A stretch of 64,000 nucleotides of DNA from Takakia lepidozioides (Eukaryota > Plantae > Bryophyta), in the NCBI GenBank assembly GCA_030704615.1, contig CM060733.1, positions 55,862,001-55,926,000 of the forward strand, in the 5' to 3' direction. Positions within the stretch are counted from its first letter, which is position 1. Every line of letters starts with the position of its first letter. A model generated the notes under the pieces. The model was not told where the DNA came from, ran no database searches, and saw nothing but the letters and a program-made list of their open reading frames with translations. Shown here in pieces: positions 10,560-59,156 of this stretch. The translations under genes were made by a program, and so were the position numbers.

Positions 10560-11344
10560 TACACAAATGTTGTTCCTTTATTAGTGCACCTGCCAGCCAT
10601 TAGTGGACAGCTGTTGGTCTGCAATGTAGTTATTGATGTCTGACGTGTGTCGCCCAAAATGAACGGCGTGTCGTTTATTTAAACGGTTTCAATAATTGAC
10701 AATAACAGCGACAGATATTATAGATAAATGTCACATTGCATATAAACAATTAGCTGGTCTGACTGCTCAGCCTCAGACAATGTCTATGCCATCAGAACCT
10801 TGGCACCGTGGAATAAAAAATATGGGACCATCTGGCGCACAATTTCAGACAAATAAATGTAAATGAACGAGTGTTTGATGACAAACTTTTGGATATCATA
10901 CACATTCATCCTTGTAAGCCAACCCCACGTTCGTTTCACAGTTTGGACTTTCCAGGTGCGCATGATCATTGGTAGTAGTATAAAGATGCATTTATTTCAT
11001 CTGCTATCCCACCCTCAGATCCTTTGGCACACTTCCGAGAAGTCGGCTAGTTATTATGCTTATTGATGAGGTTCTGAATAAAGGTTTAACAGCTACCGAA
11101 ATTGCTCCTAGGGATAGTCTGTCTACAGGGCCCACAAAAAAAAAAAATTAAAATGGACGGCTGCATGTCTGGAAGGAAGAACAGAATGTGCACAATCATC
11201 GTGTGAGCTTTCTCCGCGATATTCTCTGCTCATTCTTCAACAGTGTTCTGGAGACCTCGGTCAACAGATTTCACTGAAGATCTGCGATAGCGAGGCATCT
11301 TTGTACGAGAGGAGGGAAGATGGCTTCCTCTGAAGCGGAGTTCT

Positions 11345-14300
11345 TTGCAAGTGGAACTGCGATTTAACCCCCATCCTCAAGTCTCGCGTCACGGACTTCG
11401 CCATCTCATCCTTCCGGTAAGCCTTCCGAATCTTCCTTTGGAGCGCCGTCTCGCCCCTGTACACCATCATGAGCTGCTGCTTTCTACTTAAAGCATCGGC
11501 CACCACATTGTTCCATCCCGGTTTGTACTGGATATCCACGTCGAACAGTGCCAAAGTGTCTTGCCACCTAATTTGTTTTAGGGACAACTTAGGCTGCGTG
11601 GCAAAATACTTCACCGTGACATTGTCCGTGAACACCTTCACCGGGTTGGAGCCAATATAGTGGCGCCAAAGCTCAAGGCAATGCACCACCGCCTTCATTT
11701 CTTTCTCGTGCGTTGGCCACTGCCGCTCCACTTCATTCAGTTTCTTACTTTCGTAAGCCACTGGACGTCCCTCCTGCATGAGTACACCTCCAATCGCGAA
11801 GTCCGACGCATCCGTATGAATCTCAAATGGGCGGTCGAACTCCGGGATTTTCAGGACTGGAGCTTCCGCCATCCGCTGCTTCAACTCGGCAAAAGCTTGG
11901 CCACAAAAGGCGTTCCATACCCAGACTTTGGATTTACACAGGAGGTCTGACAGCGGCCCCGCGATCTTGGCGAAATTTCTCACATACTTTTGGTAATAGG
12001 AGGCGAGTCCTAAGAATGATCGCACTCCTGGGATCGAAGTTGGAGGCTCCCAGTCCAAGATTGCTCTCACCTTTCTGTCATCCATTTTGATCCCATCATG
12101 TGTAATCACATGCCCCAAGAACTCCACTTTTGTGACCCCGAATTCGCACTTTGAAGCTTTGGCATACAGCTTCCCTCCCCGTAATTTCTGGAACACCCTT
12201 TTGAGGTGCTCCAGGTGCTCTTCCTTTGTTTTCGAGTACACCAAGATGTCGTCGATGTACACGATCACAAAGTTGTCCAACCACTCCTGGAAAAGGCTGT
12301 TCATTAGCGTGCTAAAGGTTGCGGGTGCATTGGTGAGCCCAAAGGGCATCACCAAGAACTCATAGGAACCATACCTTGTCCTGCACGCGGTCTTTTCCTC
12401 ATCTCCTTCCGCCACTCGAATTTGATAATATCCGGAGCGCAAATCGATCCGGCTGAAATATTTCTCTCCTGCCAACCGATCGAAGAGGTCATCGATCCTT
12501 GGCAAAGGGTATCGGTTTTTGATAGTCACCTTATTCAGAGCCCTGTAATCGACACACATCCGCAGCGTCCCATCCTTCTTGTCTGCGAATAGCACCGGGG
12601 CTCCATAAGGTGACTTACTCGGCCGGATGTACCCCTTTGACATTAGATCCTTGAGCTGAGTCTTCAGCTCGACCAACTCTCTGTGGCTCAACCGGTAGGG
12701 TGCCTTGGCAGGCGGCTCCGATCCCAGTATCACCTCAATTTTGTGGTCAACTCCTCTTCACGGTGGCTAGCCGCTTGGTAAATCCTCCGGCATCACATCC
12801 TGATATTTCTCCAAAATCAACTTGATCCAATCTGGGCTCGGCTCCCCATCGCTTTTTTCCTTCACTTGTCTTATGTAAAGCAAAAACTGGGGCTCGTGTG
12901 GCTCCTCCACGGCCCACTCCCTTGCTGACAGAAGGTTTATTCGCCCTCCCACGGGGTTGGGCGTTTCCGACACTCGTAAAACTTCGCCACCATTCCCACA
13001 CGGTAATGTGACTACTCTTTTGCGGCTATCTATGACCAAAAAGGTCATCCCCAAAATGAGATCCATTCTATCGATCTCGCAAATGGTGAAGTTCTCACGT
13101 CCCTCCCAACTCCCGAACTGAAGAGGAACATCGAACGCCAACCTCGTCACCAATTGTGGTTCTCTTTTAGCAGAACGCACCTCAATCGAGGCCCCCACAT
13201 CACTTGTCGGAAGTCCCAACTTCCGTGCCGTTGCCGGTGTCATGAAGGAGTGCGACGCTCCTGTGTCCACCAATAACGATACGTTAGTTCCGGAGATTAT
13301 CCCACTCACAAACATTAACTGACTCCCTTTACGCAAGGCGTTAGTTTCCTGATACAACTCAAAAGAGTAGTTGCCTACCTTGCAAGTCTTGGCAACCACC
13401 GCCTCCACCAAGCGGCTGATAGAGGCTTCGGATAACTCCGTGGTTGCCCAAGTCATGTTCAATTGTCGGGGATTTGTACACTTCTTGGCCATGTGCCCGG
13501 GCTCCCCGCAATTAAAGCACACTCCATCGAAGGTCGCATTCTGTCCGCCATAAGCCGCCGCACCTGGTTTCCCTTTCGGGGCACGTCAAGATGACCTGGT
13601 TCTTCCATGTCCGCGACTTCGAGCACCAGCACATTGAAATCCTGAACATATCCCCGAATGTCATCCGTTTGCTTCAAATTCCTCATCTTGTCCCGGGCGA
13701 GCCAGGACGCGTTGAGGGGCACAAACTGTCTCTCATGAGTTCCTTGAACCCACTCCAGTTCAAGGTCTCTGGGTTTGGACCTCGGTCGTGAAGGCGTTTC
13801 TGCCACCATTGTTGAGCATAGCCCCTCAAATAGGTGGGAGCCACTTCCACCCGATCCTCGTCATCCAACTTGGCCGCCCGGAAGTACTCCTCTAGCTCCA
13901 AGAGCCAGGTGTTGAGTGCCTTCCGATTTTGGACGCCCTCGAAGGTGCCGGGTTCCTTAGGCTTCACCTTAAACTTTGCCTTAGTGGAAGTGGCATTAGT
14001 CGCCTTTAACACGTCTTTTAACATCCCACCAAACTGCGCCAACAACCCTTCCCGAAAGGCTGCTGGCATGGGAGGCATCTGTTGGTCTGTCGGAGCTCTC
14101 AGGGATTCCTCGGGCTCCGACTCCTCAGATTCCTCCTGTCCTTGAGCGGCCTTGCTTCCAAAGGCATGCATCGCTTCCTCAAATGGCCGCTTCGGTGACA
14201 CGTCGCCCCCATCGGGCTCACCAGGATCATCATCTTTCGAGCCGTTCCGCTTTCGCTTTGGCTTGCCCGACCCTATGATGAGGCCGATCCCAAGGACGAT
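11345..14300 (-). mobile_element. Ty3/gypsy chromovirus 5' half: gag, Zn-knuckle, aspartic protease, RT, RNase H (frameshifted)
   Basis: gag KPKEPGTFEG...WLLELEEYF; CFNCGEPGHMAKKC; LLVDTGASHSFM; [11 protein letters not shown]; RNase [13 protein letters not shown]...NVVADALSR. Pol homology stops at ...KSQFHLQ. Confidence 0.95.
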
Positions 14301-14317
14301 CATGTACTGAACTCTAA

Positions 14318-14329
14318 GCTCTGATACCA
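14318..14329 (-). promoter_or_regulatory. Primer-binding site (tRNA-iMet)
   Basis: Minus strand TGGTATCAGAGC, 2 nt after the LTR end GCGCGACA. Confidence 0.9.
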
Positions 14330-14331
14330 AG

Positions 14332-14710
14332 TGTCGCGCACCTCGCTTCGGTAAGCTCCCCTTCAAGTCATAGTTACTCGCTTGATGCGTGCGCCTAACT
14401 CCCAAACTGGCCACCGGGCCAATTCGGAGCTTCGGCTGCTCACCGGGGCATAACGGTCCCCCTTTACTCCTCCACTAGACCCTCTCCCAATTTGAGCCTA
14501 GTGGAAATTCCCTTTGGTTGATGGCAGTCCGGAATAATTCCCCACACCTTGGTCGTTTTCCGGCTCGCACGCTTACTCACTAGTTTTTGGACACCAACGG
14601 GCTTGCACTGTTCTCGGGGTTAACTCCCTATATATACTTCTGTGACTGTCCGCGGGGGTTTCACAAACAACACCACCATTTTATGGCGAACCACCACGAA
14701 AACCCTCGAT
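14332..14710 (-). mobile_element. Truncated 5' LTR (last ~380 bp only)
   Basis: Reverse complement of 7332-7712; similarity ends at 14710. Confidence 0.9.
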
Positions 14711-17700: not shown

Positions 17701-18238
17701 GTTTGAAAATTGAGTTTGCTGAGTCAGCTGAGTGGTCGGTCTGCTGAGTGTCAGTTTGCTGAGTCTGCCCATCATGATTGTGCAATGACGTCATGTTGTC
17801 TGATACCATTGCAGGGGGCACTAGAGTGTTTATATCATCGACCTCCGCAAGGGCTGTTACACTCACCTGAACTCTATCAGGGACTCGCATAGTTGTCCCT
17901 TTGTTCTACGGTGGATTCGGAAGCTTCATGCTGAGTGCTTAGGGTACTCGATGGACTCACCGGAGTGGCACGAGATTGTCCAAGCATTTCAGTTCCACGC
18001 GCCTGATGTGCCCCAGCAACCATTTAGCTGGGAGTGTGGCTTTTACGTCATGTCATTCATTCAAGTGTTTTATGAGTGGGCAAAAGTCAGAGGAAATGTC
18101 TCCAAGACTGCAAAGCCAGAGAGAGGAACACCTTTCACGAATGACTGGTTTACTTTCAAGTTTGCACTTGGGCAGCAAATGCAGTGTGCCCAGTATATCG
18201 TGCGGGGGTTGGACAATCTAGAGAAACTGTTCTCATGA
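14711..18238 (+). pseudogene. MULE-associated Ulp1/C48 SUMO-protease-like gene with long Gln/Thr-rich repetitive exons
   Basis: ECDFILVPIG (~17560), GH*SVYIIDL...HLNSI (HW motif with a stop, ~17816), PDVPQQPFSWECGFYVMSFI (~18005). GT-AG introns. Confidence 0.8.
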
Positions 18239-21200
18239 GTATGATGTACTTGTCCTGTGAAGTCTATGTACCAAAATAAAAAATGCGAGTCTTTTCGCTT
18301 ACTATTCCAGTGGTGATGAGCCCTGGGGGGTGCACTCCTACCAATATGTACCAGCCACGTGCGTGTACAAGAGGGGGTATTTTAAACCCCTCCATGTACA
18401 ACATTATACATATAGAGGGGGGTTTATATCACCTTAAATATAACCTTACAGGAGGGGGTTATAGAATTGTAGGAGTAGTCTAGTGGTAAGGGCGTAGAAT
18501 GTGTCGTGACGCACCGCGGGATCAAATCGCGATGCAATGTTGTTTTGCTTTTTTTTTTTTTTTTTCTCCCCGCGATCTGTCTCCCGCAGGCTCTCTTTTC
18601 CCTCCTCCCCCGCACCCCTTCCGTGTCAACATGGTCTTAGCAAGCCATGAGCTTTGTGACCCCCTCTCTTTCTTGTTTCTTTTTTCCTCTTATCCCATAA
18701 GATCTTTGAGCTTCCTGGAGCCATTGTGAAGTATGATCGCATTTTACCAAGATTTGGCGTTTGCGGAATAGTGGCACCCTTCCATGGCCTAAGCATACTC
18801 AACTGGTGCATGGTGGTGGTGATGAACTGGGTTCTGTGTATGCAGCAACGTTGGAGGTGAGTTCATCTAAGCATCTTAGCCCTCACAACTGCAGTAGACT
18901 AGATCTTTGATGTATACAATTTACGGAACCCTAACTTCATTTGTGATTTGTGAGTTGTGAAGGATTACTTCTTTTACACATGTCTTGTGGTGCTGCAGTT
19001 GCCAGAACAAGGCCTGACCAAGGAACTGAACTTATTGTACTCTCTGCTTGCATGTAGCGCTTTCCAGCGATAATAGAGTCTCGGTGTTAGAACTGGCCCG
19101 TTGGAACTCGCGGTTTGGGAACGCCAATCATCTGGCAGTTCTCAAAGAAATGAGAGCTCTCGGATGGAGACTGCGGCAGTTAATTTAATGGTCCTTTGTC
19201 AATAGGGTGGGATAATGTAGGCGATTACTACCTACTATTTTCTTTGAGAATATGCGGAACCTTAGCATTTCTTGTGGTTACTCTTCGTACAACATTGGTC
19301 ATGCTCGAAGGCAGTATGAACGCTTTGCGACTGCAGGAATTGCGGTTGTACCTACTAATGCCTAGGAATCTTTCATGAGAACATGCAGCAGACTGTTGCG
19401 GATTGTGTAGGGCAGTGGAGAGCTTCTGTGATTAAATTCTTGGGCACCCTCTTTTTTCTCCATGCATGCACCTGGCTCAACCCAGCTTAATTACCCACCA
19501 ATCGGTCGTGTTATCCTTCCTGTAGGTGATAATAGAGTTGGTGATTACGTGTGGAGGCTACAATGAAGATTGCTGAGTGTACAAGTGGCTGCCGATGACA
19601 TTGTTTGACATCACCTTCACTCAATGCCCATGTCTAGCTCCAGGTTTGTCTTTTCGATGTCTATCTCTACTCAGATTTGGGGGTGTGTCCTATGGTCTGC
19701 CTGTTTTGTCTCCTTTCAAATCTCAACGTCAACACTGTTGATCTCAATTTTTGAGCTCCATGTCCGGCTGTTAACTTTCTGCTTTTTCTCCACCACTTTC
19801 TTATTGGGCAAGTATTTGCCCGAATTTAAGGAAGGTTGATCCTTCTAGTCTAAACAACTGCTCGGACCTTGACTAGGATAGAGTTCTCTGAATAGCTGAC
19901 AGTATCTGCTATCCTCTTAAGGTGACATATTCTGTTTGCCTGCCGGAGGCATACTTCCTGAATTGGCCTTGAGAGGGTCCAAAGCCCAGCTGAGAGTCCA
20001 TGGCGATCTTGACAAGTATGAGAATTGTCCAAGTAGAAGTGAAGCTTGGGTAAGCTTATGCTTTGGATGTCCTTTGCACATGTCACTCCCAAGATCCCCA
20101 TCTCATGTTTCTCTGGACCACTATGCCCTGTTCCTACTTGTGACATGAAATACAAGGTTCTTGCTGCCACAGCTGATGGTTTAGCAGTGACCAATATCTG
20201 CTGGTAAAGAGACAGTGTGAGCATGAATGGATGTGGAGAGACATAGCACTTCACCCATCAGGAACTGAAAAAGTTGCAAAGCTTCAGGAGAATATTTACG
20301 AGTGTACCTCCATAGCAATCATATCCATGTAATGGCACCTTTGAATACATGATGACTATTTGGCATAACATTTTCCTCACCTAAACTGGTGTTAGACAGA
20401 CGGGGCATAGCAAAAGAAATCACATTGCTAGATGTCCAGTGAGAAACATGTTTATTGTGTTTGACTTTGATTTGTTTACATAACATATTTAGACCTTATT
20501 TATGTATGTGGGTCTATCCTCTCCTGTCATTTGGGTGTCTGGATCTTCTTTTAGATCAATATTGCAGGGTTGTGAGTTAGATTCAATGTGCCAAAATGAT
20601 GCTAGATTTCCTTGGGTTCGGCTGTGGCATGCAGGAAATAACGAGGAGAAAGTCTGGAAGACCAGGTTGAGATCCACTGCTGGGTGGTAGACCAGGCAAG
20701 AAAGGGGAGGAACCCATCACACGCAAAGAGGGGTTGTGGTTCTCCGGGGATGTACCTCGACTCTCCCACCAAGACTTTACAGAGTCCCTTGTTGAAAATG
20801 TCTCCGTCCATGCAGGACAATTTTCCTTCGACACCTGGCAAGGTCTACCTTTCTCTTCTTGCTATCTTAATTTGATCAATTTTTGTGCGAGAAGGTGGTG
20901 AAACTGTGTTATCTTGAAAGTAATGAAGACTTCAGTAGCTCCAAGTCTGTGAGGATGCTAAACATGTGGTATAGTAGAGCCAGCCTGTAATTGTGGCTGG
21001 CAGTCCACAGCTGTGTGTTAAAAGACCTGTGCAAGATATTTTACATGTGAGTGGAGTTTATCAACAATATGCAGCAGCGTATTAATACTACTTGATTCTC
21101 CAATCACAACACTCCCTTCTGGCTCTTGCTTCCAGTCTAACTGAGGGAGGGAGAGACAGAAGTAGATGTATGCAGCTCCCTGTGATTGTTGGCTTTGACA

Positions 21201-21540
21201 TGCTCTCCAGGCTTGGTCACTATCTGGTACAAAGCCTTCTGGAGTTAGTCTTGGGGTTTTGAGCCACCAGGATATCTATGAGCTTAATGCCGACACTCGA
21301 CCACCTGTTCCAACCATATCTTTCTAATGGATGGCATAGATGAATGAGAGAACCATAATTGCCCTCACTGAGGAGAAAAGACAATAAGCCAGATATTTAT
21401 GGGTCCTCACCTGACCTGACATCTGGCCCTCCACTTTACAGTAACCCTTACATGTCTTTTGTCGGTGAATCACTGTTGGGACAGGCTTCTTAATCTATGA
21501 TAGGGTGTATGTGAGCATGGGTTACCTTCATGGTCAAGCA

Positions 21541-22218
21541 TTATCTGGAGAGTGCTGTGATGAATGGGCAAAGCAAGTTGGAAAGTACCTCGTTCTGTTT
21601 GCTGTTCAAAGGTAGGCTTCCTTCCCTGAGTTTAAATTTCAGTCTAGTGCCGAGAGTGGGTGGACCCTTGAGGTCATCCAAGATGTCCTCCCCCATGTCA
21701 CTGACTAGAAACAAGTTCAGGGAAGTTTTCTGCCTAACTTCATTTTCATCAGACAATCTCATGGCAACAGACATGGCTTTGGACACTACAGCCTCTAAGT
21801 CGGATTTATCCAGCAGGGTCAAGACTTGCGGATCCAGGTCCAGGTCCTTGAGAATCTCTTCTACTCTGGTGTTGGGAAAACACCTTTTGATCTCAGTCCA
21901 AACCAGGAAGTGGACAGAGGTACCAATATCAGTTCTGTCGATCATCGAAGAGAAACACTGGGGGAACAAATTTTTGTCCATTATGATATAGTCCACAATG
22001 GAACGTTCCCCAGTTTGGGATTTCTCACGAGTCCACTGCACTTGGTCACCTCTTGTCTTGTTATTCAAGGTCAAAAGCTGAAGCTCTTCCAGACAGTTAA
22101 TTAACCGTCTGCCATTAGAATTCAACTCGTCCTCACCAGAAGACCCAATGATATCGTCCTGATGGAGCCCTTTGCCCACTTGGGCATTGAAGTCACCTTG
22201 CAATAGCACCACAGACAT
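21541..22218 (-). mobile_element. Internally deleted non-LTR retrotransposon (APE endonuclease fused to post-RT C-terminus), RTE-X/CR1-like
   Basis: LQGDFNAQVG...NSNGRRLI...QWT...SIVDYII...TSVHFLVW, then a jump to GTRLKFKLREGSLPLN. Confidence 0.75.
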
Positions 22219-22219
22219 G

Positions 22220-23200
22220 AAGAGAAGCTTTGGAATCTGACACTTTTCTGACCCCAGTCAATGGTGGGACAATGTGGGTGGATGGTCAATTGGAAACAAC
22301 AGCGGCAACAGTGCAATTGATAGAGCAAGGCATTGCTGATGAAGGTACCTTCTTCAACACATTTCAGCCCGAGGGCACCTTCTGGTTTGACCTGTTTCAG
22401 CCTGTTTTTCCTCTCATCCTCCTCAGCCCTGAAGCATATGTATTGAATTCTGTAAGTTAGCTCGTTGGGTGGATCTGCGGTGCTTTGGAGTGACTTTGCA
22501 AGTTACTGCCGAGGTGGCAGCATGACAGTACCTAAAAAAAGATAACAGAGATGGAGAGAAGCTGTCAAGGAATGAATACTTCTCTGACCCCAGTCAGTGG
22601 TGGGACAATGTGAGTAGATGGTCAACTAGAAATAGCAGCGGCAGCAGCGCAATTGATAGAACAAGGGACTGCTAATGAAGGTACCTTCTTCAACACATTT
22701 CAGCTTGTTTTTCCCTGTTATCAGAATCGTCCCTAAATTTCCAGATGGCCGGATTCCAAGCTCCAGATTACCTATGATTCCATGTGGAAGGATAGCTACA
22801 AGAAACCTGCATGGGTAGATGGTCAACTGGAAGCCACTGTAGCAACTGCAGAGGCATGATGTACGCATTGTTAGTGTGGAGGGAGGGGTAGCTGTTGATG
22901 CAGGGAGAGGATCGTGGGTGCAAAATCATCCAAGAGGGCCAGATTTGGAGCAAGGAACAGCGCTGGCAGGAGTTCTATAAATATGATCCACAACGGTGGG
23001 ACAATATTGTCAACAAGGTGAGCTTTCTTCATGCAACATCGTAGGGAGTTTGACAGAACTTTGTATTTAAATATGTTAGTGTGGAGGGAGGGGTAGCCGC
23101 TGATGCAAGGATGGACTGTGGGTTCAGGATCACCCAAGAGGGCTACCAGCAGTGGAAGTAGCAGCATTTGGTCAATAGCAGCAGCAAGAATTAGCAACGT
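22220..23200 (+). mobile_element. Scrambled copies of the LINE-like repeat seen at 660-3330
   Basis: ttttctgaccccagtcaatggtgggacaa and gatggtcaa(c/t)tggaa blocks, reverse-complementary to the 0.7-3.3 kb repeats. Confidence 0.6.
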
Positions 23201-23386
23201 CAAACTCATCAATCAGGTACTTGCTTCTGTATACATTTCATCCTCTTATCAACGTAGTCCCTGCTTGGACAGCCTATAGGGTTGTATAAAATAGGACTTT
23301 GGAACCTTCCAACCCGGGTGCTTTGTTATTGGTCTATCAAGGTCTGATTTGAAATGTTTTCATTGCATTTTGCAGGTGAACTCATC

Positions 23387-26300
23387 ATGGAAGAAGAGTT
23401 GGAAGTAAAAGTCCTGCTCGCTGGAGGAGATGCATCACCAAACAGGCTTGGTTCTGTGTTCACTGTGCAAGGTGTCACATACAAATGCATCCGAGCAGAA
23501 ATTCTAGGTGATGAGCTTGTCTCAGCAAAATTTCATTTCCTTTCCATGGGGGGTAGTGTCCTTTCAGCCAAGTAGGAAGAGAGGATGGTTCTGAAAGGGG
23601 ATACTGTACACATTAAGATTTCAGACCAAAATGATGGGGACCAAGGATTGAAAAGACCTCTATCTTCCAGTGGTTCTACGATCTTGCATGAGGACAGACC
23701 AGGCGAGGACTCGGCACCAGTGTCTACCAAGATGAGGATGGACCCTGATACACCCTTTGCTGGCGATGGTGGAAATGAAGACCATGCACATGAGCATGCA
23801 CTTCAGCAGAGATCTGGTAGATTGTGCAGCACGTTGGCTACATCCAACGATATTCAAAAATGGCAGAAAGAGATTAGAGCCGTTGAAAGGAAAATCTCTG
23901 CAGAAGGACAATGTGACAAGTTTGAGCTGATGACAAAGGATCAACAAGGACAAGCAATGTTCCACATATGGTGTGTTGAGTGTGAGGATGTTTATGCACG
24001 GTCTGGGAAAAACAAACCATATGATGCATGTGCAAACTTTATGAGATCTCATTTGAGGAGTGAGGGGCATCGCATAGCCTATGAGAGGCGTCATGGGAAG
24101 GGTTCATCACAATGTGTCATCAGCCCTGTAAATGCAGATGAAGCATTTGATGCAAAGAAGAACAGGGTGAAGGAGGCATTAGAGGAAGTCGCTTGGTTTT
24201 GTGAGGACAATCCTGGAAACAGATTTGAGATTGTGGAAGCCACAATTGGAGACTATTCGCAGTTGGGTTCCATAAGGATTAGGTGCCCACTTGATTCGAA
24301 GTGGCTACTCTTGTTTCCAAGGACAAGTTCTTTGCAATCTTCTTTGACAGAGCATGTGAAAGGAAAAACTCATGTCGATGCAGAGATTTGCCAGAAGATT
24401 GGAAGTAGTGAAGGACTGTGCAAAAAGAGAGGAAGGCCTCCAAAGCCTATGATTGCCAAAGATGTAAAGCAACGGGATCTAAGCTCTTTCTTGGTCAGTC
24501 AACCTGTGTTGCCGTCCCCACCACTTGACAATCCAATTGTGGCATCAACAATGGGAGCATCCTCGTCACAAACTCCATACACTTGTGTTGACGCTGCCCA
24601 ACGGGCAGATCTGATCGAGGATTGACAATTATAGCAAAGGTCCCAATGCAACAAAGGAAGAGACAGTTTGTGTTGGGGCCTATGGGATGAATGGTGGGAG
24701 TACAACTAGCAGAGAATAAGTCTGAAACCATTCCTTCAAGATAGCAAGGGAGGAAAGAAGTGGTATGTCGAGCCGTTGACAAATGCAACCATCACTCTAA
24801 CCAATCAAGAGCATAAGGTTGTTGGTACGTTTCGGCACGCGGATTGTTTTAGAGTGTCATTGGATGGGGAGCCATTTCCAAACTTGAGATGTTCAGCATG
24901 TTCTTCCATTCCCTTGGAAAATGACTTCAGAATGAGGGTATATAGAGAAAGAGGTGCCATGGAATGTAGAGGGGAGAAAGATACTGGCAATGGAAGAAGG
25001 TTGTCATATCTTGGAAATGCCGAGATTGTCAAACAAGTTTACAAAAACAGACAGGAGTTGAGACAGTTGAGGTTCAAATTGTGGGAGGCCAGGACCAAAG
25101 TGGCATCCTTGTCTGTGCAATGTAGGAGTTTGAAGGAGTCTGGGATTGAGGCAATTGAAAGAGGAGATGTTCTCAAATTTTGTCGTGATATTGTTGATGC
25201 ACATAGGAGGGGGGATTTTGAAGGAAAAGAAAGTTTGTGGGATTTTCTTGTTGATATGGGCAAGAATATTGACAGGTCTCCACAAGGGAAGAGGTATGGT
25301 ACTAGCACAAAAACAATGTTTGAGACTGTGCAGCTTTGGGGGGGGTCCGAGATTTCATCATTTTTTGGCTTCAAATGTGGGGGGTCCTTTTATTGATACT
25401 ACAAGACGGTCTTTGAGGAAAGGTTTGAAGTACAGAGCGGGAGAAAGGGATGATATATTTCAGCATGTGGCTGGAATTTACAGAGATGTGATGGAAGATG
25501 CAAATATTCCAATGGGAAGCATCCCAGTGATGGTGGCCGAAGATGAAACTGTTGTGAAGCGATTGGTACGTTGGATTGCTAGGGATGACACCCTTCTCGG
25601 GTTCTGTGGGCTTCAAGACAACCATGTATGTATTTCAAATTTTGTGGTGCAAGTGGGAGAAGGGAATCAGGGTACGAACATATTGTGGAGGCATTCAAAA
25701 ACAATGTGGTTGCCCATTACGCCAGAGTGTTGATAGCAAACCCTCTACATGTACGATTACCTCGATTGGTATTGGTAATCCAGCTCACTTGCAATAGATT
25801 TGACAACAATTTTGTGAGATCACAATGGGAAGTGGTGAGACAGTTGTGGGACAAATATGTGAGGGACGTGGTTGGGCCTATAATTGGGCATGCTTCAGGC
25901 GGAGATAGTAGGAGGAGAAAAGTGATGTTAGAAGATTATGCCAATGGGGCTGGAAGTAGATTTTGCATCCATTGGGAATGATGGTTGTTTACAGGTCGAG
26001 TGTGCAACGGGGGAGATATATACGGACTCCATGATCAGGACTTCATCCACAATGGGAAAAAATTGGTAAATCCCTTGGACAGTGCATCACGGACTTTGGT
26101 GTTGGGTGATGAGGTTGCTACATTGAATCATGTGTTATTGGTCTACCATTCATTTTCAGTGGACAAGCATGGACTTCGGGAATGTGATATCAAAAGAGAA
26201 GATCGACAGAATTGGGTAGCAGCTCAACGACTGGCATCTCGGAAGGTGCAAGCTTGTTTGAGGGAGTTACAATCAACAATGAATCATCGAAGGGAGAGGA

Positions 26301-27799
26301 CCAAAGGTACTGAAATTTACCTATACATCATTTCATGCTACATCGACATTTTTTTGTCTCCTCACATGTCATTGTGTGAGAGGATACAATCTGCTGCGAA
26401 GGTATCGTTTTTTTTCAGATTGTGGAAGTTGTGGTTATTCCACCACGAGGTGTATAATCTGAAATCCTTCTTCATTAGCAGGGAAGCATACTTGGATTTA
26501 CAAATTTCATGCCACTACGTGGTTCTACTTATCAAATTGTTCAAGGATAAGTTTAATCATGTGCAAGTTCCTTTGAGCCTTGTTGGTTCAGATGTGTGTG
26601 AAATATTCTTCAGCAAAGTAGGAGGTATGTTACGGAATGAGAGGACATATGACGGGTGTGATTTGATTGAGAGTGCGGGAGCATTAACACGCATATCCGA
26701 GTTCGAGGTGAATCCAAAAGGACCCAAGTTCTCAAGAGCTCACAAGAAACAAGAACACATTTGGTTTTCTTTGGAGAAGAAGCCAGGTATCCCCCTTGCT
26801 GATTTGTCCGACTTTTCTACTGTCCAATCGGATGATTGCATTGTGGAGGCTTTGAAAACTGGATTTCTAGAAGCGCAACTTTTATGCCATAAACTTGGGA
26901 TGAAACCAAACAAAGCGACAAACTTGGATTGGTGGAATGAGCCATGGACAATTGAGAGACAAATGGAGGCCGAGCTATTCAAAAGCATGGAAGAGGAGGG
27001 TGATGATGTCGATGCCATAGATTCTATTTGTCCTCTTAATGCACACACACATATTCAAAATGAGGTCGTGGAAGATGAATTGGTGTGCGGGCCTTCGAAT
27101 TCAATGGAGGATGTTTTGAGCCAACCTTTGGATGATCATGCGGAAGAGGTACTTATTCAAATTGAATTGAGACATACTCTGGATGCTGTCATTGATGAGT
27201 TTGAACAAAAGAAAGATGGACCGAAGGCGGTGGTTCCATTTGTCAAAGTAGACGGGAAGACCATATTCAAAAGCACTTTGGTTAGCCAACTCAATGGCAA
27301 CCCTACTCTATCCAAGGATAGATTGACACGAGTAAGAAGTGCATCGATGTTGTTTTGCCGAGAAAACAAACCAACTACCAACAACAAAGCCACGAGCTTG
27401 GGATTGGGTTCGGATTGTGCTGTATTTTTTGTTAATGAGGAGACTGCGATCCAAACTACAAACAGGAAAGGCAGACCAGGGAAAACCTGCAGAAGAGCAA
27501 CCAAATGCACTTGGTATTTGGGCAGGGTTCAAAGAATGCGGAAGAAAATCAATAAGCGGTTTGTAGAATGTAGGGATTCTGTTGATTTATTGGAGCGTCC
27601 TTCTCATATGGAGATTGGGTTAGCATGGTACCAAAAAATTCGAGGAGGGGTCTATACGTACGATTTGACGGATAACATGATGGTTGATTTGGATTCCATT
27701 ATCGCGTTAGCATGTTTAAAGTACAATGTCAAGTCAAACACATATGTACTTGATGCAAATGACCGAAAAGTCTTTGACAACTTTATCAAAGGCAAATAA
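23387..27799 (+). pseudogene. P-element-like DDE transposase (~1470 codons) with N-terminal C2H2 fingers and AT-hook; disabled
   Basis: Coiled coil (QELRQLRFKL), HTH-like GKRYG..TKTMFETVQLWGGPRFHHFL..N.GGP..DTTRR, AEDET (D1), GHASGGD (D2 site, apparently D>G), DQDFIH (DxxH), DRQN, SDVCEIFFS (E). In-frame stops at 23573, 24623, 24632, ~24707 and 25979; frameshifts at ~25340 (G-run) and ~25665. Confidence 0.8.
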
Positions 27800-28798
27800 T
27801 TTTTTTAATTAATTTGTTATATTTTATTATGTTTTAAATGAATAAATTCGATATAATATAAAAACATACATATACATATTGGAGAATTATTTTTAATGAT
27901 GGAAAATGAGAATATACATACAGAAGGGGGTACTTTTTAAAAATTGTAAATTCTTGTATATTTACAGGAGGGGGTTTTATAATCTTCAAAAAATATGTAC
28001 AGAGGGGGTATAAATTATCCAAGGACCCGTATACAGGGGGTTTTTTTATTAGGCGACGAACGCACGTGATACGCACAGTTTATAAAGAGTGCGCCCCCCA
28101 GGTGATGAGCACTTTTGTGTACTGTGGGTGCTGGCATATTTTGTAATGTTGTCACTAAACTCAATGGACACAATGGTATCAATTTTTCCATGCACTGAGC
28201 ACCCGAGTCTACTGAGCTTGAATGTGCGAGCAGTATGCTGCTGAGGCTAGGACTGGTGGGTCGGTACCTAGTCTGGTAGGCACCATGTCCATGAGTCTGC
28301 TGGGACGCTGGATTGGCATGAGTCATTAGGGAGGTAGTCCACTGGGAGTCTGTCCAATTTGAGTCTGTTGTTGTGGATGAGTCTGCTTGAGACTTAGTCT
28401 GTCGAGCAGTCTGCTAGGAGAGTTGCAGGGATGAGGTGGGAGTGTGGTGAGTAGAGATTCGGAGTGGACAACGAACTGGGCAGCAGACTGACTTACTGGC
28501 GTGCGCAGTCTGCTGACTGTGACTCTGTTGGGACTGTACGTCAGTCCGTTGGGAGATTATGCAGGAGTCTGTTGGGAGACTGTGTGGGATTCAGTTGGGA
28601 GACTGGAGGAGTACGTTGGGAGACTGTGCAGGAGTCCATTGTGGGATTCTACAGCCGTCTGATGGGAGTTTGTGCCGGAGTTTGTGCCGGAGTCTGCTGG
28701 GATTGTGGAGACTGGAGGAGTCCGTTGGGAAACTGTGCATGAGTCCATTGCGGACTTGTATTTCAGAAAGAGACAATGCTACTAGAGGAATTGCAGAC

Positions 28799-31700
28799 TT
28801 ATATTGTTTTCTTCGTGACACCTACACGACCTGAAACCTTGCGAATTTTTGAGTATATATGTGTTGTAGGTGCAGGTGCAGACACCCTCTTGCTGGTTCT
28901 CCGCAAAACCCTAGGCCGGGTTTTCCAGGCCTCCACAAAATCTCGTCTCCTTTTCAGAGACATGTTGTTGTTGTCGTTCAGTGGACGGAAAGCCTTCACT
29001 GCCGCAGGGTGCAACATTCCAGCCGCACTTTTCGCCAGGATATCAATGAGCTGCCCTCTATACATACGAAGAGCAGATCGGGCATGTGCCTCCAGGTATT
29101 TGTCATCACCTACAATACGAAGTATGTCTGCAAATTCTTGTTCCATTGAGGCTGAGACCTCCAGAGGTGCCTTGTCGTAGGGGAAGTCGTCCGGAGGATG
29201 TCTTTCCATGAACTGATTGGATTCGTCGTTGACGCCGGCACCATTGCCCAAGAGCAAATTAGGTAATCCTCCATGAATGGTTCCCAGCGCCGTGCCACAA
29301 GCGCGCACAAGGAGGCCATCCTGCAGGTCAGGGTGAGGCATCTTCAGGACACGGACTTGATGCTTGCATAAGTTTCCCTTCATTGCCCATGGGCACGTGC
29401 AACAAGCCCAATCGCAATTAGGATTGTAAACAATGTATGTTGTGCCGGGGTGGTTGCTGCTGAGAACGTAGGTTGGTTCACCAGGACCCAAGGGAAGAGT
29501 AACATTCTCAGCATGAATGTCTCGTGCTGCAAGTATAGAACTGGATATGTACTTTTTGTGTTTGTCGTTTTTTATGAACCTGTGGGTCTTCAAATGGATT
29601 GCGTACCAGTAGTGTGTTAGCACACGGCCAGTGAGTTCCCATATAAGCCAGTCCAATCTACGACCACTCATCTTGCCTTTCCCCATGACAAGTCTTGCCT
29701 TCAAATTTCCATGGTATGTCTCAATGCTTGCATTTGTGTCTTGGCTTGCATGAGGGACATGGCGGGCTGCTGTACACCACATTGCATTTTGGGCTTCCAG
29801 TACTGCTCGATATAGTCAAGAAATTCATGTCATTTTGGGTATTTTGACCTCATACGACGGATTCTCCTTGCAACCCACCGAAGCACTCTTTCTCGTTGCG
29901 TGGTCCCACTCTACAGTACATGAGGTCTCCCATATCCTTCAACAAGTTTACAGCGGTCACCGGATCCTTCGTTTTCTTGCATGATTGCTTCACCCATGCC
30001 TTGCGAACATGCCAAAGGCAGAGGAAAATGAGTACTCATTCAAAAACAATTCTGCACAACACACATGGTACACATTAGAGTCTTGGGATCGGACTGCAAT
30101 GGTGGACCGCGGGAGTGGACTGTAACAACGACCTATATCAGCGGGCAGAGCCACTGGACTTGCCCAGTGGACAGTACAATGCCATGACGTTGATGTGCTG
30201 GAATAACCCCATTGGACTACCTAGTGGATTTCCCCGTTGGACTTCCCCCTAGCTAGGACTGGGGCAGCGGACTGCATTAGCGGACTGCCGAACGGACTTG
30301 CCAGGGACTGCCGAGTGGACTTGGCAGCGGATGGCCGATCCCAGGGACTGCTAGTGGACTTGGCAGCGGACTGCCGAGCGGACTTGCCAGCAGACTGCCC
30401 AACGGACTTGCCATGGACTGCTGAGTGGACTTCCCAGCGGACTTGCCAGGGAACTGACGAGCGGACTTGACAGCGGACTACTAGTGGATTTGCCCAACGA
30501 ACTGCCATCGGGTTTCGCTACAGGAGTCTGCCAGTGGACTGTAGCAATGGACTGCTACAGTGGACCTCGACAATAGACCGGTGCTGTGGACCAACAGACT
30601 TACCGAATAACGTTGATTTTTGCTTCGGCATCGTCCACAATGAAGGCATTGGGTCGCCAGCTCGGCAAATCTGCAAGGAATCGCGCAAGGCTCTCATCCA
30701 CGGCACCATGTCTGTTGTCCGATTCCTTGCGGATATGATATAGGCAACTGATATACCGCTCAACCACTCGTTGAAGACCATCAACGTGTACAATAGGAAT
30801 TGTTGGAATGCACAATGTCAGATGGTCAGAGCATGCAAATTCCGCTCAATTCTGCACGAGAAGACTTCATAAGAGTGATTCACAGTGGGTCTGTCTCTCG
30901 GTCTTCCGCAACGTACACATAAAAACATATAGAAAGGGTCAGCACACCAAATTTTATGTGAATGCTGCATGGTACTATGCTATCATGTTCCTACAAGTCC
31001 ATGGAATTGTTCGAATAATACCTTGTCATGATTTGTTCCAAATGTTGCATCAAACTGGACCACTTGTAAGCAATTCATCTCATGACAATTGACTAGTGAC
31101 AGATAAGACTATATATATTTCTGCGTGGGGATCAGTGGATGATACCAGATTCAAGGTAATTATAGTGGAGAAAATGTGGACAACCAGACGGTTGTGTCTT
31201 CTTTACCTACCATGCCTCTTTCTAAAAAGAGTATGAGCAGTGCAAGATTTATGTTTTGGAAGTAGGAAGATTACAAGAAATATCGCATTTCCTTTTCCAA
31301 ACAAACATGGAATGGTTGGAGCTAACAATTTTTCTTGTGAGTAACATGGTAAGTGTAGCTTTCGCTTGGCAAGTGTACCTCTCCTTGATATACAATTGCT
31401 GTGATGAGACTCTGCAAGCGATACGGGCATGTCCTAGTTCCAGCATTCGTCGTTTCTACCACGGAGTCTGTATGCCAATAGTGAATGTCAAATCTCCATC
31501 AAAATGCTCGAATGTTGGCTCTAATTTCTCCTCTTGATAGAAAAAAACGGACGCAGGATTCTGGTCTCTCCACATGCGCACACTCTCCACATCATCGGTG
31601 TGCTTTTTGAAGGTTTGTCACGCACGTTTTTCGGCAAGGTTGCGAACATCTTGCTCCAACAAGAAATCATCACGGGTTCATGCATCGCCCAAGCCGGTGT

Positions 31701-52894: not shown

Positions 52895-55386
52895 CTAAAC
52901 CAGTGCATCCAACCGAGGTTCAAAGGAGAATCCCAGAACACTTCGAGCTTCAAGATAATCATTGAGGGTGCAGCTGGGCAGCCACCACCATGAGTTTTGG
53001 TAGATGTCATACATAAGCATGTCTCGCGAGTAGTACTCTGTGAAACAGATGTGGTCTCCATGGGCAACGCACAGGAAGTGATGACCTTGGGACCTGAAAA
53101 CACCCCATGCATGATTGGCAGATGTTATTTTTGTCCTACCAACTCGAGTACCTGACCTTACACTCTTGCTATGGGTGTAAACACCAGTTACATGGAGCTA
53201 GCACAGGAGTGTCCTATTCTAGACAAGATTATATGACTTAGTAAACAAAACTGAAAGAAGGTCTTCCAACCTAACTTCATAACCAGCAGTGTGCAAACAA
53301 CCATTCGCCCTTACATACGAAAGTTTAATTTCTCCTTTGCCAAGGCCCCATCACAAATTGCATGAAAGGAACAGAAAAGGTATTAAAGGAGAATGGATAA
53401 GAAACCGACTTGAAGAGCATTTTGAACAACCGATCTGGCATGCGTTGAACCTCAATCCACTCTTTCTTGGCCATATCCAGCCACCATAGATGTACACTTT
53501 TAAGTGTCCCAAATTCTTCTACTCCTCCCACCATCATCAGGCGGCCACGGTTCCCCAAAAGCTGTGGGCATACTAGAGAGAGAGGCATTTTGACATCAAC
53601 TTCGTGCCATCCACCATGCTCTACATGGTATGCCAACACTCCAGTTGCTGCCCCAAACGTCATACTGTAAAGATATCCATTGATGTAGGCAGTCCCAGCT
53701 ATCAGGGCAACCCTTCTGCGAAGGCTGCTCGTCATCTTCCATGAGTCGCTCTTTGAGTCATATACCTATGATTCAATTCAGATTTTCCCACTTTGTAAGA
53801 TGTAAAGGTAGCAAACTGTAGTCTGGAAATTACCAAATCATAACCCAAAATATAGGATTGGCTGCTTTCATGTATTACAATTGCCCCCAACAACTTAAAG
53901 AAACTGAAAGTAAATGAGACTCAGGGTATACACATGCCTGTTAGCAACAAACCTGGGGAGAAGTCTATCAAGCTCCAAAATGACCTACTGAGCTACATGT
54001 TCAAGTTAAGGCTTCGAATCATTCCATCACATAGAATTTGTGTGTCTTACAGCATATAGATTGTGCGAGCCAAATGCTTTATCAAAGTTTGGCCAGGACA
54101 AAAGCAACATAGCTTGATCCAATCACCAATGATAATCTTAAAACTCAATGCTGACGGAACCTTAGGGGAGAATCAAATGCTCAGCATTTGGAACCTCTGA
54201 TAGCAATCTGTCTGTAGCAAACCTCATGAATGACTGTAAAGAACGAAGTCAACAGATTGTGTGTGGTCTTGGGATCTCACTCCACTGGATTCCTATTACA
54301 AGAATTCCTCTGCGGGCTCTCTCTCATGGTTTCAAATTATCTCCCTCACTTGTGTAGGTTTGTCATGTGGAAGAAGAAATCACTCTACAATCCCAACTTC
54401 AATTCATGCATTTCAAATGAAGCTTAGGAGGTGCCTTCTATTTCTGGATAGCAACTTCCTTTGCAACCAGTCAAACTCAAGCTGACAATTTTAGCTTGGA
54501 TGTAAGCTCGTCTGCCATTGTATCCACATCGACATGGCTCATACGCTAAAAGAGAATTCAGCCAATTGAGAATCCACACGGAAAAATAATAAGAGACACT
54601 GACCTGGGATGTCAACTGGTCTCCATCCTGGGCAACCAGAATCTTGTAAGTCTTCTTCTCTGGATCCATGACCATGCCTACCACGTACGGGGATTTCATG
54701 TCGAGCATTGCGGGGAGCTTGCGCTGCGATCGGGTCATAGGATTGGAGACGAACAACGAGCGGCTCTGGGATCCAGTACCTTCCAGACACAGAAGGCCCC
54801 CTGCGGCAGCCAAGACTAAGAAAGATTCGAAAAATGGACAGGAGAGAAAGAACGAGAGAGGTAATAGGTGCCACTTGTGCAGGGTGGGGTCATAGGCAGC
54901 GCATCTTTGCCGGAAGGGATCCGCAAACATAAGAAAGAAGGGACCATGGGAAGGAACCCTAGCGCAGATTGACAGAAAACCCCGAGAGTACAGAATGGTG
55001 TTCCATCTCTTACAAACGCAACGCAACCGGAAAAAGCTTGGCAGTGGTAACCACGCCAAAATGATATCCAGGAGATGCTCGGGCAGTTCACTCCACAGCA
55101 TTTCATCCATGGTGCCTGCCGTATCCTGGCTACACGAGCTTTCGGATTGGGCAACTAACACGATTTGATTCACTCCTTCTTCTTTCATGATTGCCAAATT
55201 CCCTTTCCCAGACGCATTAATGACACTAAGCGATGCCAGGGATCTCACAAGGTTGGCTGTGCAAGAAATCATTGCAGCATCATTCTCAAGGTTTCCGAGA
55301 CTGGAATCCGCCCCGTCCATTGCAAGCGAAACCACACCTATACCAGCTTTACTACCTTTGAACCTTCGTTTGCGCTTTCTAGTCAT
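52895..55386 (-). CDS. F-box (kelch-like) protein; exons 55386-54604, 53765-53410, 53093-52895
   Basis: F-box LWSELPEHLLDIILAWLPLPSFFRLRCVCKRWN; AAAGGLLCL; VSNPMTR..RKLP; VYDSKSDSW; GRLMMVGG; C-terminal GFSFEPRLDALV*. Splice phases are consistent. Confidence 0.92.
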
Positions 55387-57189: not shown

Positions 57190-59156
57190 GAATGGTGTCA
57201 TGGAACGCGATGATCGCAAAATATGCACAACACGGTCTGGGATGGAGGCTTTGGAGACCTATGAGCAAATGATGCGTGGGGGGGTGAGGCCCAACCATAT
57301 CACGTTTGTTTGCATTTGCAATGCATGTGCGAGCCTTGCAGCCTTGGAAAAGGGCAAAGAGGTCCATGGTGATATCGTCAAAGCTGGAATAGTACCAGAC
57401 GTCATTCTGAACACTGCCCTGGTGGACATGTATGCCAAATGATGCAAAGGGAGTGTTCGACAACATGGTTGAACGAAATGTGGTGTCGATGATCGCAGAA
57501 TATGCACAGCACGGGTGTGGAATGGAGGCTTTGGAGACCTATGAGCAAATGATGCGCAGGGGGTGAGTCCCAACCATATCATGTTTGTTTGCATTTGCAA
57601 TGCGTGTGCGAGCCTTGTAGCCTTGGAAAAGGGCAAAGAGGTCCATGGTGATATCGTCAAAGCTGGAATAGTACCAGACGTCATTCTGAACACTGCCCTG
57701 GTGGACATGTATGCCAAATGTGGGAGCATTGAGATTGCATTGAGCAGATGATGTGGGAAAGGGTGAAGCCCGACCGCATCACGTTTGTTTGTGTTTGCAA
57801 GGCATGTGCAAGCTTGGCAGCTCTCGAAAAGGGCAAAGAGGTCCATGGTGACATCGTCAAAGCTGGAAGTGTACCAGATGTTATTCTACACAGTACCCTT
57901 ATGGACATGTATGCCAAATGTGGGAGCATTGAAGATTCAAATGGAGTGTTTGACACTACGGCTGAACGTGATGTGTTGTCGTGGAACGCAATGATTGCAG
58001 GATATGCACAACAAGGCGCGGGACTGAGGCTTTGCAGACATATAAGCAAATGATGCAGGAAGAGGTGAAGCCCAACCACATCACGTTTTTTTGTGTTTGC
58101 AATGCATGTGCAAGGGTGGCAGTCTTGGAAAAGGGCAAAGAGGTCCATGATGACATCGTCAGAGCTGGTATTGTACCAAATGTCACTCTAAACAATGCCC
58201 TCGTGGACATGTATGCCAAATGTGGGAGCATGGAGGATGCAAAGGGAGTGTTCAACAATATGGCCGATCGAGATGTGGCGTCCTGGAATGCTATGATTGC
58301 AGGATATGAAGGAATGCAAATGGAAAGCTTAAAGCTGGACAATATCATCTTTATATGTCTTCTCTCTGCATGCAGCCACATTGGCCTACTGGATGAAGGA
58401 AGATGCAACTTTGATTCCCTGAGTCAACATCATGATGTCTCTCCGACAGTAAAGCACTCTGGCTGCATGGTGGACCTTCTTGGACATATGGGGCAATTGG
58501 ATGAGGCAGAGGAGCTTTTAACAAAATGCCAATGAAACCAAATGCTATGGTTTGGAGGGCCTTGCTTGGTGCCTGCAGAATCCATGGCAATGTGGAGATG
58601 GTTGAACGTGCAGCAACATCTATTCTCAAGTGGGATGAACAGGATGTTGCGACTTATGTGTTGCTATCAAACAACTATGCTGCAGCTGGCAGGTGGGACG
58701 ATAGTGCAAAGGTACAAAAAATGATGAAGGTCAGAGAGGCTAGAAAGGAGCTAGGTCACTGCTACTTTGAGGTTGGCAACAAGGTGCACACCATTGTTGT
58801 AGATGACAAATTGCACCCCAAAATTAAGGAAATCCATGCTGAGCTGAAAAGATTGTTTGGACAGATGAAGGAGACAGGGTATGTGCCTGACACGTTTTGT
58901 ATTGCATGATGTGGGGGAGGAGCAAAAGGAATTTTCTCTTTGCCAGCACAGTGAGAAGCTGGCCATTGGTTTTGGGCTAATCAGCACGGCCCCTAGGAGT
59001 ACACTCCGGTTCATCAAGAATCTTCGGGTGTGTGGTGACTGCGACACCTCCACCAAGTTCATTTCAAAGATTGTTGGCCGCGCAATTGTTGTACGGCATG
59101 CTAACCGCTTTCACCACTTTGAAGATGGGGTTTGTTCTTGCCGGGATTACTGGTGA
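57190..59156 (+). pseudogene. PLS-type PPR-E-DYW RNA-editing factor pseudogene
   Basis: Repeated P/L/S motifs (VDMYAKCGS, SWNAMIAGY, KPNHITF), E domain (WRALLGACRIHGN), PG-box-like region, DYW HSEKLAI...CGDC...CSCRDYW. Stop at 57440 and several frameshifts. Confidence 0.92.

Follow-up and report, generated by a model that had tools for sequence, protein, structure and literature searches.

A broken cut-and-paste transposon in Takakia lepidozioides, probably from a divergent branch of the P/THAP9 superfamily that has no THAP domain

The window analysed here is a stretch of 64,000 nucleotides (64 kb) from the bryophyte Takakia lepidozioides (assembly GCA_030704615.1, contig CM060733.1, positions 55,862,001 to 55,926,000 of the forward strand; all coordinates below are those of the window). 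It contains an element of 9,781 bp at 18322-28102 that is bounded by a perfect 8-bp target site duplication (TSD), TGATGAGC, and carries a broken transposase gene. We conclude, with a probability of roughly 85%, that this element is a cut-and-paste transposon of a divergent, THAP-less branch of the P/THAP9 superfamily that is present in non-seed land plants. An earlier reading made from the letters of the window alone (the sequence-only reading) had proposed a P/THAP9-related lineage in a land plant, and this proposal is supported by structural comparison, by a profile match, by Pfam and by the ends of the element.

The features that define the two ends of the element, in order along the window, are as follows.

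18314..18321 (strand not applicable): left copy of the TSD, TGATGAGC
18322..18337, plus strand: left terminal inverted repeat (TIR), CCTGGGGGGTGCACTC, with the 16-bp C-Y-Y...CACTC layout also found at the ends of related elements L001, L003 and L004 (described below)
18357..18363, plus strand: subterminal ACGTGCG motif, +36 from the left end, a candidate transposase-binding site
18365..18461 (strand not applicable): left subterminal GTAYA-N-AGGGGG repeats
27918..28042 (strand not applicable): right subterminal GTAYA-N-AGGGGG repeats
28061..28067, minus strand: subterminal ACGTGCG motif, +36 from the right end
28087..28102, minus strand: right TIR, CCTGGGGGGCGCACTC in the minus-strand reading
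28103..28110 (strand not applicable): right copy of the TSD, TGATGAGC

The left and right TIRs agree at 15 of 16 bases. A degenerate pattern made from them has two matches in the window, both of which are the ends of the element, where 0.08 would be expected by chance. A blind scan around the gene, which looked for 16-bp inverted ends (four mismatches at most) with an exact duplication of 8 bp on their outer sides, returned this TSD/TIR pair as its sole match, and we estimate that such a scan gives about 0.07 chance matches per locus. Additionally, of the eight GTAYA-N-AGGGGG matches in the window, six are no more than 200 bp from an end of the element. The ACGTGCG motif is a candidate binding site for the transposase. 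The perfect TSD and the 16-bp TIRs of the sequence-only reading were both located, and it was also right that the ends, unlike those of canonical P elements, do not begin with CA, since they start C-Y-Y-GGGG.

All of the coding signal in the element is on the plus strand and, from full-length relatives together with a reading of the 5' region, it belongs to one gene, with a start codon at 23387 and a stop codon at 27797-27799. The gene and the domains and motifs of its product are given below.

23217..23375, plus strand: GT..AG intron of 159 nt in the 5' leader, directly before the start codon; its joint is present in one contig of sequencing run X6, which carries an RNA label by guess
23387..27799, plus strand: broken transposase gene with about 1,470 codons; intact relatives, of 1,420-1,530 aa, are colinear with it
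23972..24448, plus strand: N-terminal DNA-binding region with two CxxC...HxxxxH fingers and an RGRP AT-hook (alignment A5)
25338..25427, plus strand: helix-turn-helix (HTH; GGPR...GP...T..R) in a shifted frame, aligning with residues 150-200 of Drosophila P transposase
25536..25550, plus strand: AEDET, the first catalytic Asp, which is Asp in 51/51 relatives and aligns with D230 of P transposase
25892..25918, plus strand: ASGGDSRRR, with Gly in place of the second catalytic Asp (Asp in 52/52 relatives, GAC in public runs)
26033..26062, plus strand: DQDFIHNGKK, with the D(2)H signature at the start of the helical insertion domain (Asp in 50/52 and His in 52/52 relatives)
26585..26614, plus strand: GSDVCEIFFS, the catalytic Glu (Glu in 52/52 relatives)
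27386..27796, plus strand: C-terminal beta-barrel with a possible BAH-like fold (a weak lead), from a model of the window's own piece

The motif order described in the sequence-only reading is borne out on the plus strand: a coiled-coil region, the HTH, AEDET, SGGDSRRR, DQDFIHNGKK, an insertion and GSDVCEIFFS. Four residues of the family alignment do not vary (D269, D388, H437 and E621), and 50 of the 52 sequences have D434. A D...D...D(2)H...E string of this kind has been given as the signature of the P superfamily, in the form [C/D](2)H (PMC8230255). The insertion between DQDFIHNGKK and GSDVCEIFFS is about 175 residues long in the window; in an intact relative of 1,016 aa (P0002) the distance from the Asp of D(2)H to the Glu is 187 residues, versus 192 in P transposase. 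Helices of the P0002 model span residues 462-604, in keeping with the all-helical insertion of about 190 residues that P transposase has between beta5 and alpha4 as its GTP-binding domain.

The open pieces of the window gene were searched separately, unrepaired and unjoined, and structures were predicted for the intact relative P0002 and for the window's unbroken C-terminal piece. The AlphaFold2 model of P0002, built on an alignment of 21 sequences, has a predicted local distance difference test score of about 90 over residues 230-740. Foldseek with this model placed two entries for Drosophila P transposase first (6pe2/6p5a; E 5.6e-9, TM 0.66-0.69), followed by RAG1 (E 7.5e-4). Alignment to P transposase with VIA-align gave Z 21.6 with a root mean square deviation of 4.3 over 405 of 442 residues, pairing residues 168-656 of the model with residues 137-566 of the chain and so taking in, at the level of the fold, the insertion at 339-528 of P transposase. 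The runners-up were HzTransib (Z 11.2), RAG1 (about 10) and Hermes (7-8). The structural check against Drosophila P transposase that the sequence-only reading had proposed thus gave P transposase as the best match, with Z 21.6 versus no more than 11.2 for any other.

Sequence profiles point weakly in the same direction. A profile of 52 family sequences (A6) matched 6p5a_A at a marginal E of 0.013, although the match is specific, ranked second behind an acidic low-complexity match; it aligned the HTH (GGPR..N.L...GP...T..RWL) and placed LAEDET on LAFDEM (D230). There was no match to PDB sequences when the 604-aa piece of the window gene was searched with phmmer or when a 23-sequence profile was used, and Pfam and NCBIfam gave no useful match on any open piece of the window gene. 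Among the relatives, the Pfam family PF21787 (TNP-like RNase H N) scored 49.4 bits in P0141 of the sea spider Nymphon striatum and 21.7 in the fern protein P0004, against a cut-off of 24.6, and both matches fall on the segment homologous to residues 236-291 of P0002. Another relative, P0140, matched PF12017 at E 0.061. No match to PF21788, PF21789 or PF12596 was found in the window pieces or the family members tested. As a lead only, proteins picked out by a language model as resembling the window protein are hypothetical proteins of Basidiomycota, followed by clusters with TNP-like Pfam domains.

These data bear directly on whether the element could instead belong to the hAT superfamily. hAT elements are common in plants, make 8-bp TSDs and have BED-type fingers, and an automatic plant pipeline would probably call an element such as this one hAT by its TSD length; the CxxC...H...H fingers at the N-terminus fit as well. 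Nevertheless, Hermes reaches Z 7-8 where P transposase reaches 21.6, there is no hAT match in Pfam (the C-terminal dimerisation domain, PF05699, was not matched in any of 23 family members), the signature is D(2)H and not C(2)H, and the ends are unlike the hAT consensus. We therefore regard membership of hAT as very improbable.

Several observations weigh against placing the element in the P superfamily. The protein that was modelled, P0002, is 46% identical to the longest piece of the window gene and is not the window protein itself, and the statement that the fold is closest to P holds relative to the PDB, in which neither Kolobok nor KDZ has a solved structure. The profile reaches P transposase at a marginal E value, and no plant member tested reaches the cut-off of any Pfam model of the P families. 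D444 of P transposase, the one GTP-ligand position that could be aligned, is variable in the family (in a tentative alignment that is not significant). No THAP domain was found with Pfam in the N-terminal piece of the window gene or in eight full-length relatives. Finally, P elements have 31-bp TIRs that start from CATGATG, and hence ends that begin with CA, where the TIRs here are 16 bp long, start C-Y-Y-GGGG and do not begin with CA.

The same differences could be taken to mean that the family is a separate superfamily, related to P and sister to it and perhaps to Kolobok. Besides the failure of plant members at every Pfam cut-off for P, the different N-terminal DNA-binding domain and the different ends, the protein has an extra C-terminal domain and is only 14% identical to P transposase in the structural alignment with the P0002 model. 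But the length of the TSD, the order of the domains, the D(2)H signature, the size of the insertion domain and the fold all match P, and one animal protein of the family passes the cut-off of PF21787. Where a deep branch ends and a superfamily begins is also a matter of convention. We consider a separate superfamily unlikely and favour a deep branch within P/THAP9.

Relatives of the window protein are numerous. The 604-aa piece found 99 matches, of which those with names come from the fern Adiantum nelumboides and the liverworts Riccia sorocarpa and R. fluitans. A search with P0002 found proteins of 1,420-1,530 aa, one of them from the liverwort Calypogeia fissa, and reached a cnidarian-like set in EukProt as well as N. 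striatum. A profile search of 1.84 billion cluster representatives returned 5,453 clusters at E<=1e-3, with 851 of them at E<=1e-30; the rows from the cluster-representative search are all close family members with E<1e-79 and provide no bridge to named families. Plant members share 40-60% identity, and the named ones are annotated as 'hypothetical protein' and rarely as 'transposase'. Two members of about 2,200 aa (P0185 and P0191) have some 700 residues beyond the usual 1,500. In N. striatum, P0141 and P0144 consist of repeated fragments of the N-terminal core of the transposase joined to a C-terminus like YqaJ or viral alkaline exonuclease; these gene models may be chimeric, or the neighbour may come from a different mobile element.

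Complete elements were delimited around some of these genes. One protein, P0101, is encoded twice on a single contig (L001:9146-16887 and L002:9147-16886; ENA ERZ25073694, ctg132431), in inverted copies separated by about 60 kb. Over 7.7 kb the identity of the two copies is 99.86%, and their ends read CTCGGGGGGG...CACTC. The flanks of one copy are GCTTTGAG/TGTAAAGG and those of the other TGTAAAGG/GCTTTGAG, so that two 8-bp TSDs have been exchanged, and such a swap is the mark that recombination between inverted copies leaves when it inverts the segment that separates them. The blind scan gave a single pair for the element of C. fissa (L003; 10.1 kb, TSD TGTACAAG, ends CCCTGGGCCCTCACTC and CTCTAGGCCCTCACTC) and a single pair for that of R. 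sorocarpa (L004; 9.2 kb, TSD GATGTCTT, ends CTCGGGGATGTCACT(T/C)). It gave no TSD/TIR pair for L005, the closest relative of the window protein, which is probably a fragment. In seven of the eight ends of four elements a GTGCG(A/T) core begins about 36-39 bp in from the terminus, the motif itself at +34 to +37. Because the ends are alike in the window and in the related elements, the 8-bp TSD, the 16-bp C-Y-Y...CACTC TIR and the subterminal site at a fixed distance are traits of the whole family. The sequence-only reading had named a lack of 8-bp TSDs in other copies as one of the results that would count against it; three related elements in other organisms have them.

Given how short the TIR is, the TSD/TIR pair in the window might be supposed to be a chance match around an unrelated decayed gene. 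This is extremely improbable, because it is the only pair that the blind scan returned where about 0.07 were expected by our estimate, and because the same end layout and the conserved subterminal motif recur in three other elements that encode the same family.

Taken together, the modelled and aligned features predict a transposase that starts with two Cys/His fingers and an AT-hook, followed by a coiled coil and then an HTH. Next comes a D-D-E domain of the RNase H-like type, which the all-helical insertion domain splits after D(2)H, and the C-terminus is a conserved beta-barrel. By analogy with P transposase, this enzyme would dimerise, bind at the 16-bp ends and at the GTGCG and GTAYA-N-AGGGGG sites inside them, excise the element and reinsert it across a staggered cut of 8 bp in the target, which would give rise to the 8-bp duplication. 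Any requirement for GTP is likewise inferred from P transposase.

The C-terminal 140 residues are conserved in the family and form the barrel, which corresponds to residues 854-982 of P0002. Its best solved matches are the BAH domains of ORC1b, DIM2, EBS, DNMT1 and ZMET2 (Z 5.2-6.9), and the leading Foldseek rows, at E 0.04-0.7, are mostly proteins that contain BAH domains; a search of the Atlas by shape with this domain was uninformative. These Z scores are below the level at which identity of fold can safely be stated, so that the BAH-like reading of the model is a weak lead. If it holds, the barrel may be a targeting module.

The copy in the window cannot make its enzyme, judging from its reading frame. 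There are five in-frame stops (23573, 24623, 24632, 24707 and 25979) and two frameshifts (an extra base near 25338 and a missing base after 25661), which accounts for the broken frame implied by the sequence-only reading. In the N-terminal region one Cys of the second finger has been lost. The second catalytic Asp, which the sequence-only reading had aptly put in brackets, has been replaced by Gly (GGC, 25898-25900) at a position where all 52 aligned relatives have Asp. With five stops, two frameshifts and this substitution the element is a dead copy. Its ends are intact, so intact copies elsewhere could still move it in trans.

Public sequencing runs contain a version of the element without most of this damage. 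Contigs from runs labelled with the same organism (X1) and from a plant metagenome (X5) are 98-99% identical to the window copy and lack the five lesions listed here.

24707: TAG (stop) in the window, CAG (Gln) in the run version
25338: extra base in the window, absent from the run version
After 25661: base missing in the window, G present in the run version
25899: GGC (Gly) in the window, GAC (catalytic Asp) in the run version
25979: TGA (stop) in the window, GGA (Gly) in the run version

The 23573 stop codon reads CAA (Gln) in the runs, through the joint changes 23573 T>C and 23575 G>A; the comparison covers all the lesions but the stops at 24623 and 24632. Since contigs drop rare variants, the sequence in the runs most likely represents another allele or what most copies of the family have, and either way these lesions are private to the window copy. 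In two runs that are RNA by guess, contigs cover 23373-25332 and 26098-27628, one of them with a GT..AG joint, which suggests that a version of the family is transcribed.

Two further contigs differ from the window in their layout. In X5, one contig matches the right flank as far as 28101, which is 2 bp short of the TSD, and its next 816 letters are unlike the element; this may be an empty site or a second copy of the flank. A single X1 contig, with a side of 29 letters, joins 22952 to 27707 and skips 4,754 bp, and may represent an internally deleted, non-autonomous derivative.

The 5-kb non-coding part at the 5' side of the element contains two further features.

21541..22218, minus strand: LINE (long interspersed nuclear element) endonuclease-like fragment (Pfam PF14529, E 4.5e-4, below cut-off)
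22400..22990 (strand not applicable): very high-copy repeat or low-complexity stretch, at which the depth of X1 contigs is 40-100x that of the rest of the element

There are also direct repeats inside the element at 22242-22368 and 22578-22704. The LINE-like fragment and the high-copy repeat are probably nested insertions, which would explain the greater length of this copy compared with its relatives.

The history of the family was examined with a FastTree phylogeny of 54 sequences, in which most rows have no taxon label and the root is arbitrary. All labelled plant members form one clade with 100% local support. Inside this clade the window sequence, P0003 and the Adiantum sequences fall together, and a liverwort subclade is separate from them; the cnidarian-like sequence branches outside the clade. 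This branching favours a long residence in land plants over a recent transfer. A recent horizontal transfer into the plant lineage, for example from a fungus or an animal, would be in keeping with the relatives in the cnidarian-like data set and the sea spider, with the Basidiomycota proteins among the language-model look-alikes and with the known propensity of P elements for horizontal transfer (PMC5751038). It is at odds with a single plant clade in which the subclade that holds the ferns and the window is separate from the liverworts and the animal-like sequences fall outside, and the 40-60% identity between plant members points to an old divergence. We consider such a transfer improbable. 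A wider picture, which we offer tentatively and would put at somewhat less than even odds, is that of an undescribed deep branch of P that has been in plants since early land plants and persists in ferns and liverworts, with relatives in cnidarians, arthropods and perhaps fungi, that is still transcribed and probably mobile in this plant, and in which zinc fingers with an AT-hook replaced the THAP domain and a BAH-like C-terminal domain was gained. If that were true, this domain, resembling a chromatin reader, could steer insertion.

The surroundings of the element in the window contain the following features.

11261-14411, minus strand: pieces of a long terminal repeat retrotransposon, namely reverse transcriptase with RNase H, aspartic protease with a zinc knuckle, and gag
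17951-18238, plus strand: Ulp1-protease match, 20.4 bits (cut-off 20.7)
28799-29779, minus strand: SWIM-finger match, 18.4 bits (cut-off 19.6)
54424-55386 (minus strand), 57981-58535 (plus strand) and 61101-62552 (minus strand): an F-box open reading frame (ORF) and several pentatricopeptide-repeat (PPR) ORFs

The sequence-only reading had the element inserted into a host Mutator-like element (MULE), and the flanks lend this near-threshold support at most. No MULE ends were found, the ORFs on either side of the element have no MULE domain or other Pfam domain beyond the near-threshold SWIM and Ulp1 matches, and there are no long inverted repeats in the 11-40 kb part of the window. The flanking SWIM and Ulp1 matches fit DNA derived from transposable elements but are insufficient to call a MULE. 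The PPR and F-box ORFs and the chromovirus pieces fit a plant nuclear genome.

With regard to what is already known, P is not among the superfamilies in a 2022 review table of land-plant transposable elements (PMC9033089), and a 2025 Pfam screen of 1,007 plant genomes for 17 superfamilies including P reported seven others (PMC12973397). We found no report in the literature of P in ferns, bryophytes or lycophytes. Because no plant member tested reaches the Pfam cut-offs, screens based on Pfam cannot see the family, and a classifier that sorts on TSD length would probably assign it to hAT. The P element is a textbook animal transposon, and the transposon catalogues and pipelines used for plants work from a set list of TIR superfamilies that does not include it (PMC9033089). 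A large unnamed family in ferns and liverworts would thus have been missed by the standard plant transposon screens. Recognising it would correct the annotation of repeats in large fern and bryophyte genomes and add new hosts to those known for the P superfamily. How the DNA-binding module was exchanged would become visible as well, with THAP in animals and zinc fingers plus an AT-hook here. Intact transcribed copies could provide a transposition tool for non-seed plants and could show whether the dependence on GTP is ancestral.

Comparison with other superfamilies helps to place the family. Kolobok is generally regarded as related to P, with a similar catalytic signature, and usually has a THAP domain, but it makes a 4-bp TTAA TSD, whereas all five TSDs of this family are 8 bp long and none has TTAA. 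Transib and RAG1 share the architecture of an RNase H domain with an insertion domain and provide the second-best structural matches, at Z 9-11 versus 21.6 for P transposase; Transib TSDs are 5 bp long. No Pfam match to the KDZ families (KDZ/Zisupton) was found in the window pieces or the members tested. hAT elements (Ac, Hermes) have in common with this family the 8-bp TSD, similar N-terminal fingers and an RNase H fold with an insertion domain, and differ from it in their C(2)H signature, their dimerisation domain, their ends and the low score of Hermes.

P-type transposons are found outside animals. Repbase entries for P in fungi are limited to Pucciniales and Allomyces (PMC5751038), and there are green-algal entries as well; none is from a land plant. 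The THAP domain is reported to be restricted to animals and absent from plants (PMC7776569), which means that it may not define the P superfamily outside animals. The P element and THAP9 share with the element described here the 8-bp TSD, subterminal repeats inside short TIRs, the order of coiled coil, HTH and split RNase H domain, the D(2)H signature and a helical insertion of about 190 residues before the Glu. Apart from their ends, they differ in having a THAP domain where this element has two Cys/His fingers and an AT-hook, P transposase is about half the length of this protein and is without the extra BAH-like barrel at the C-terminus, and the hosts here are ferns and liverworts.

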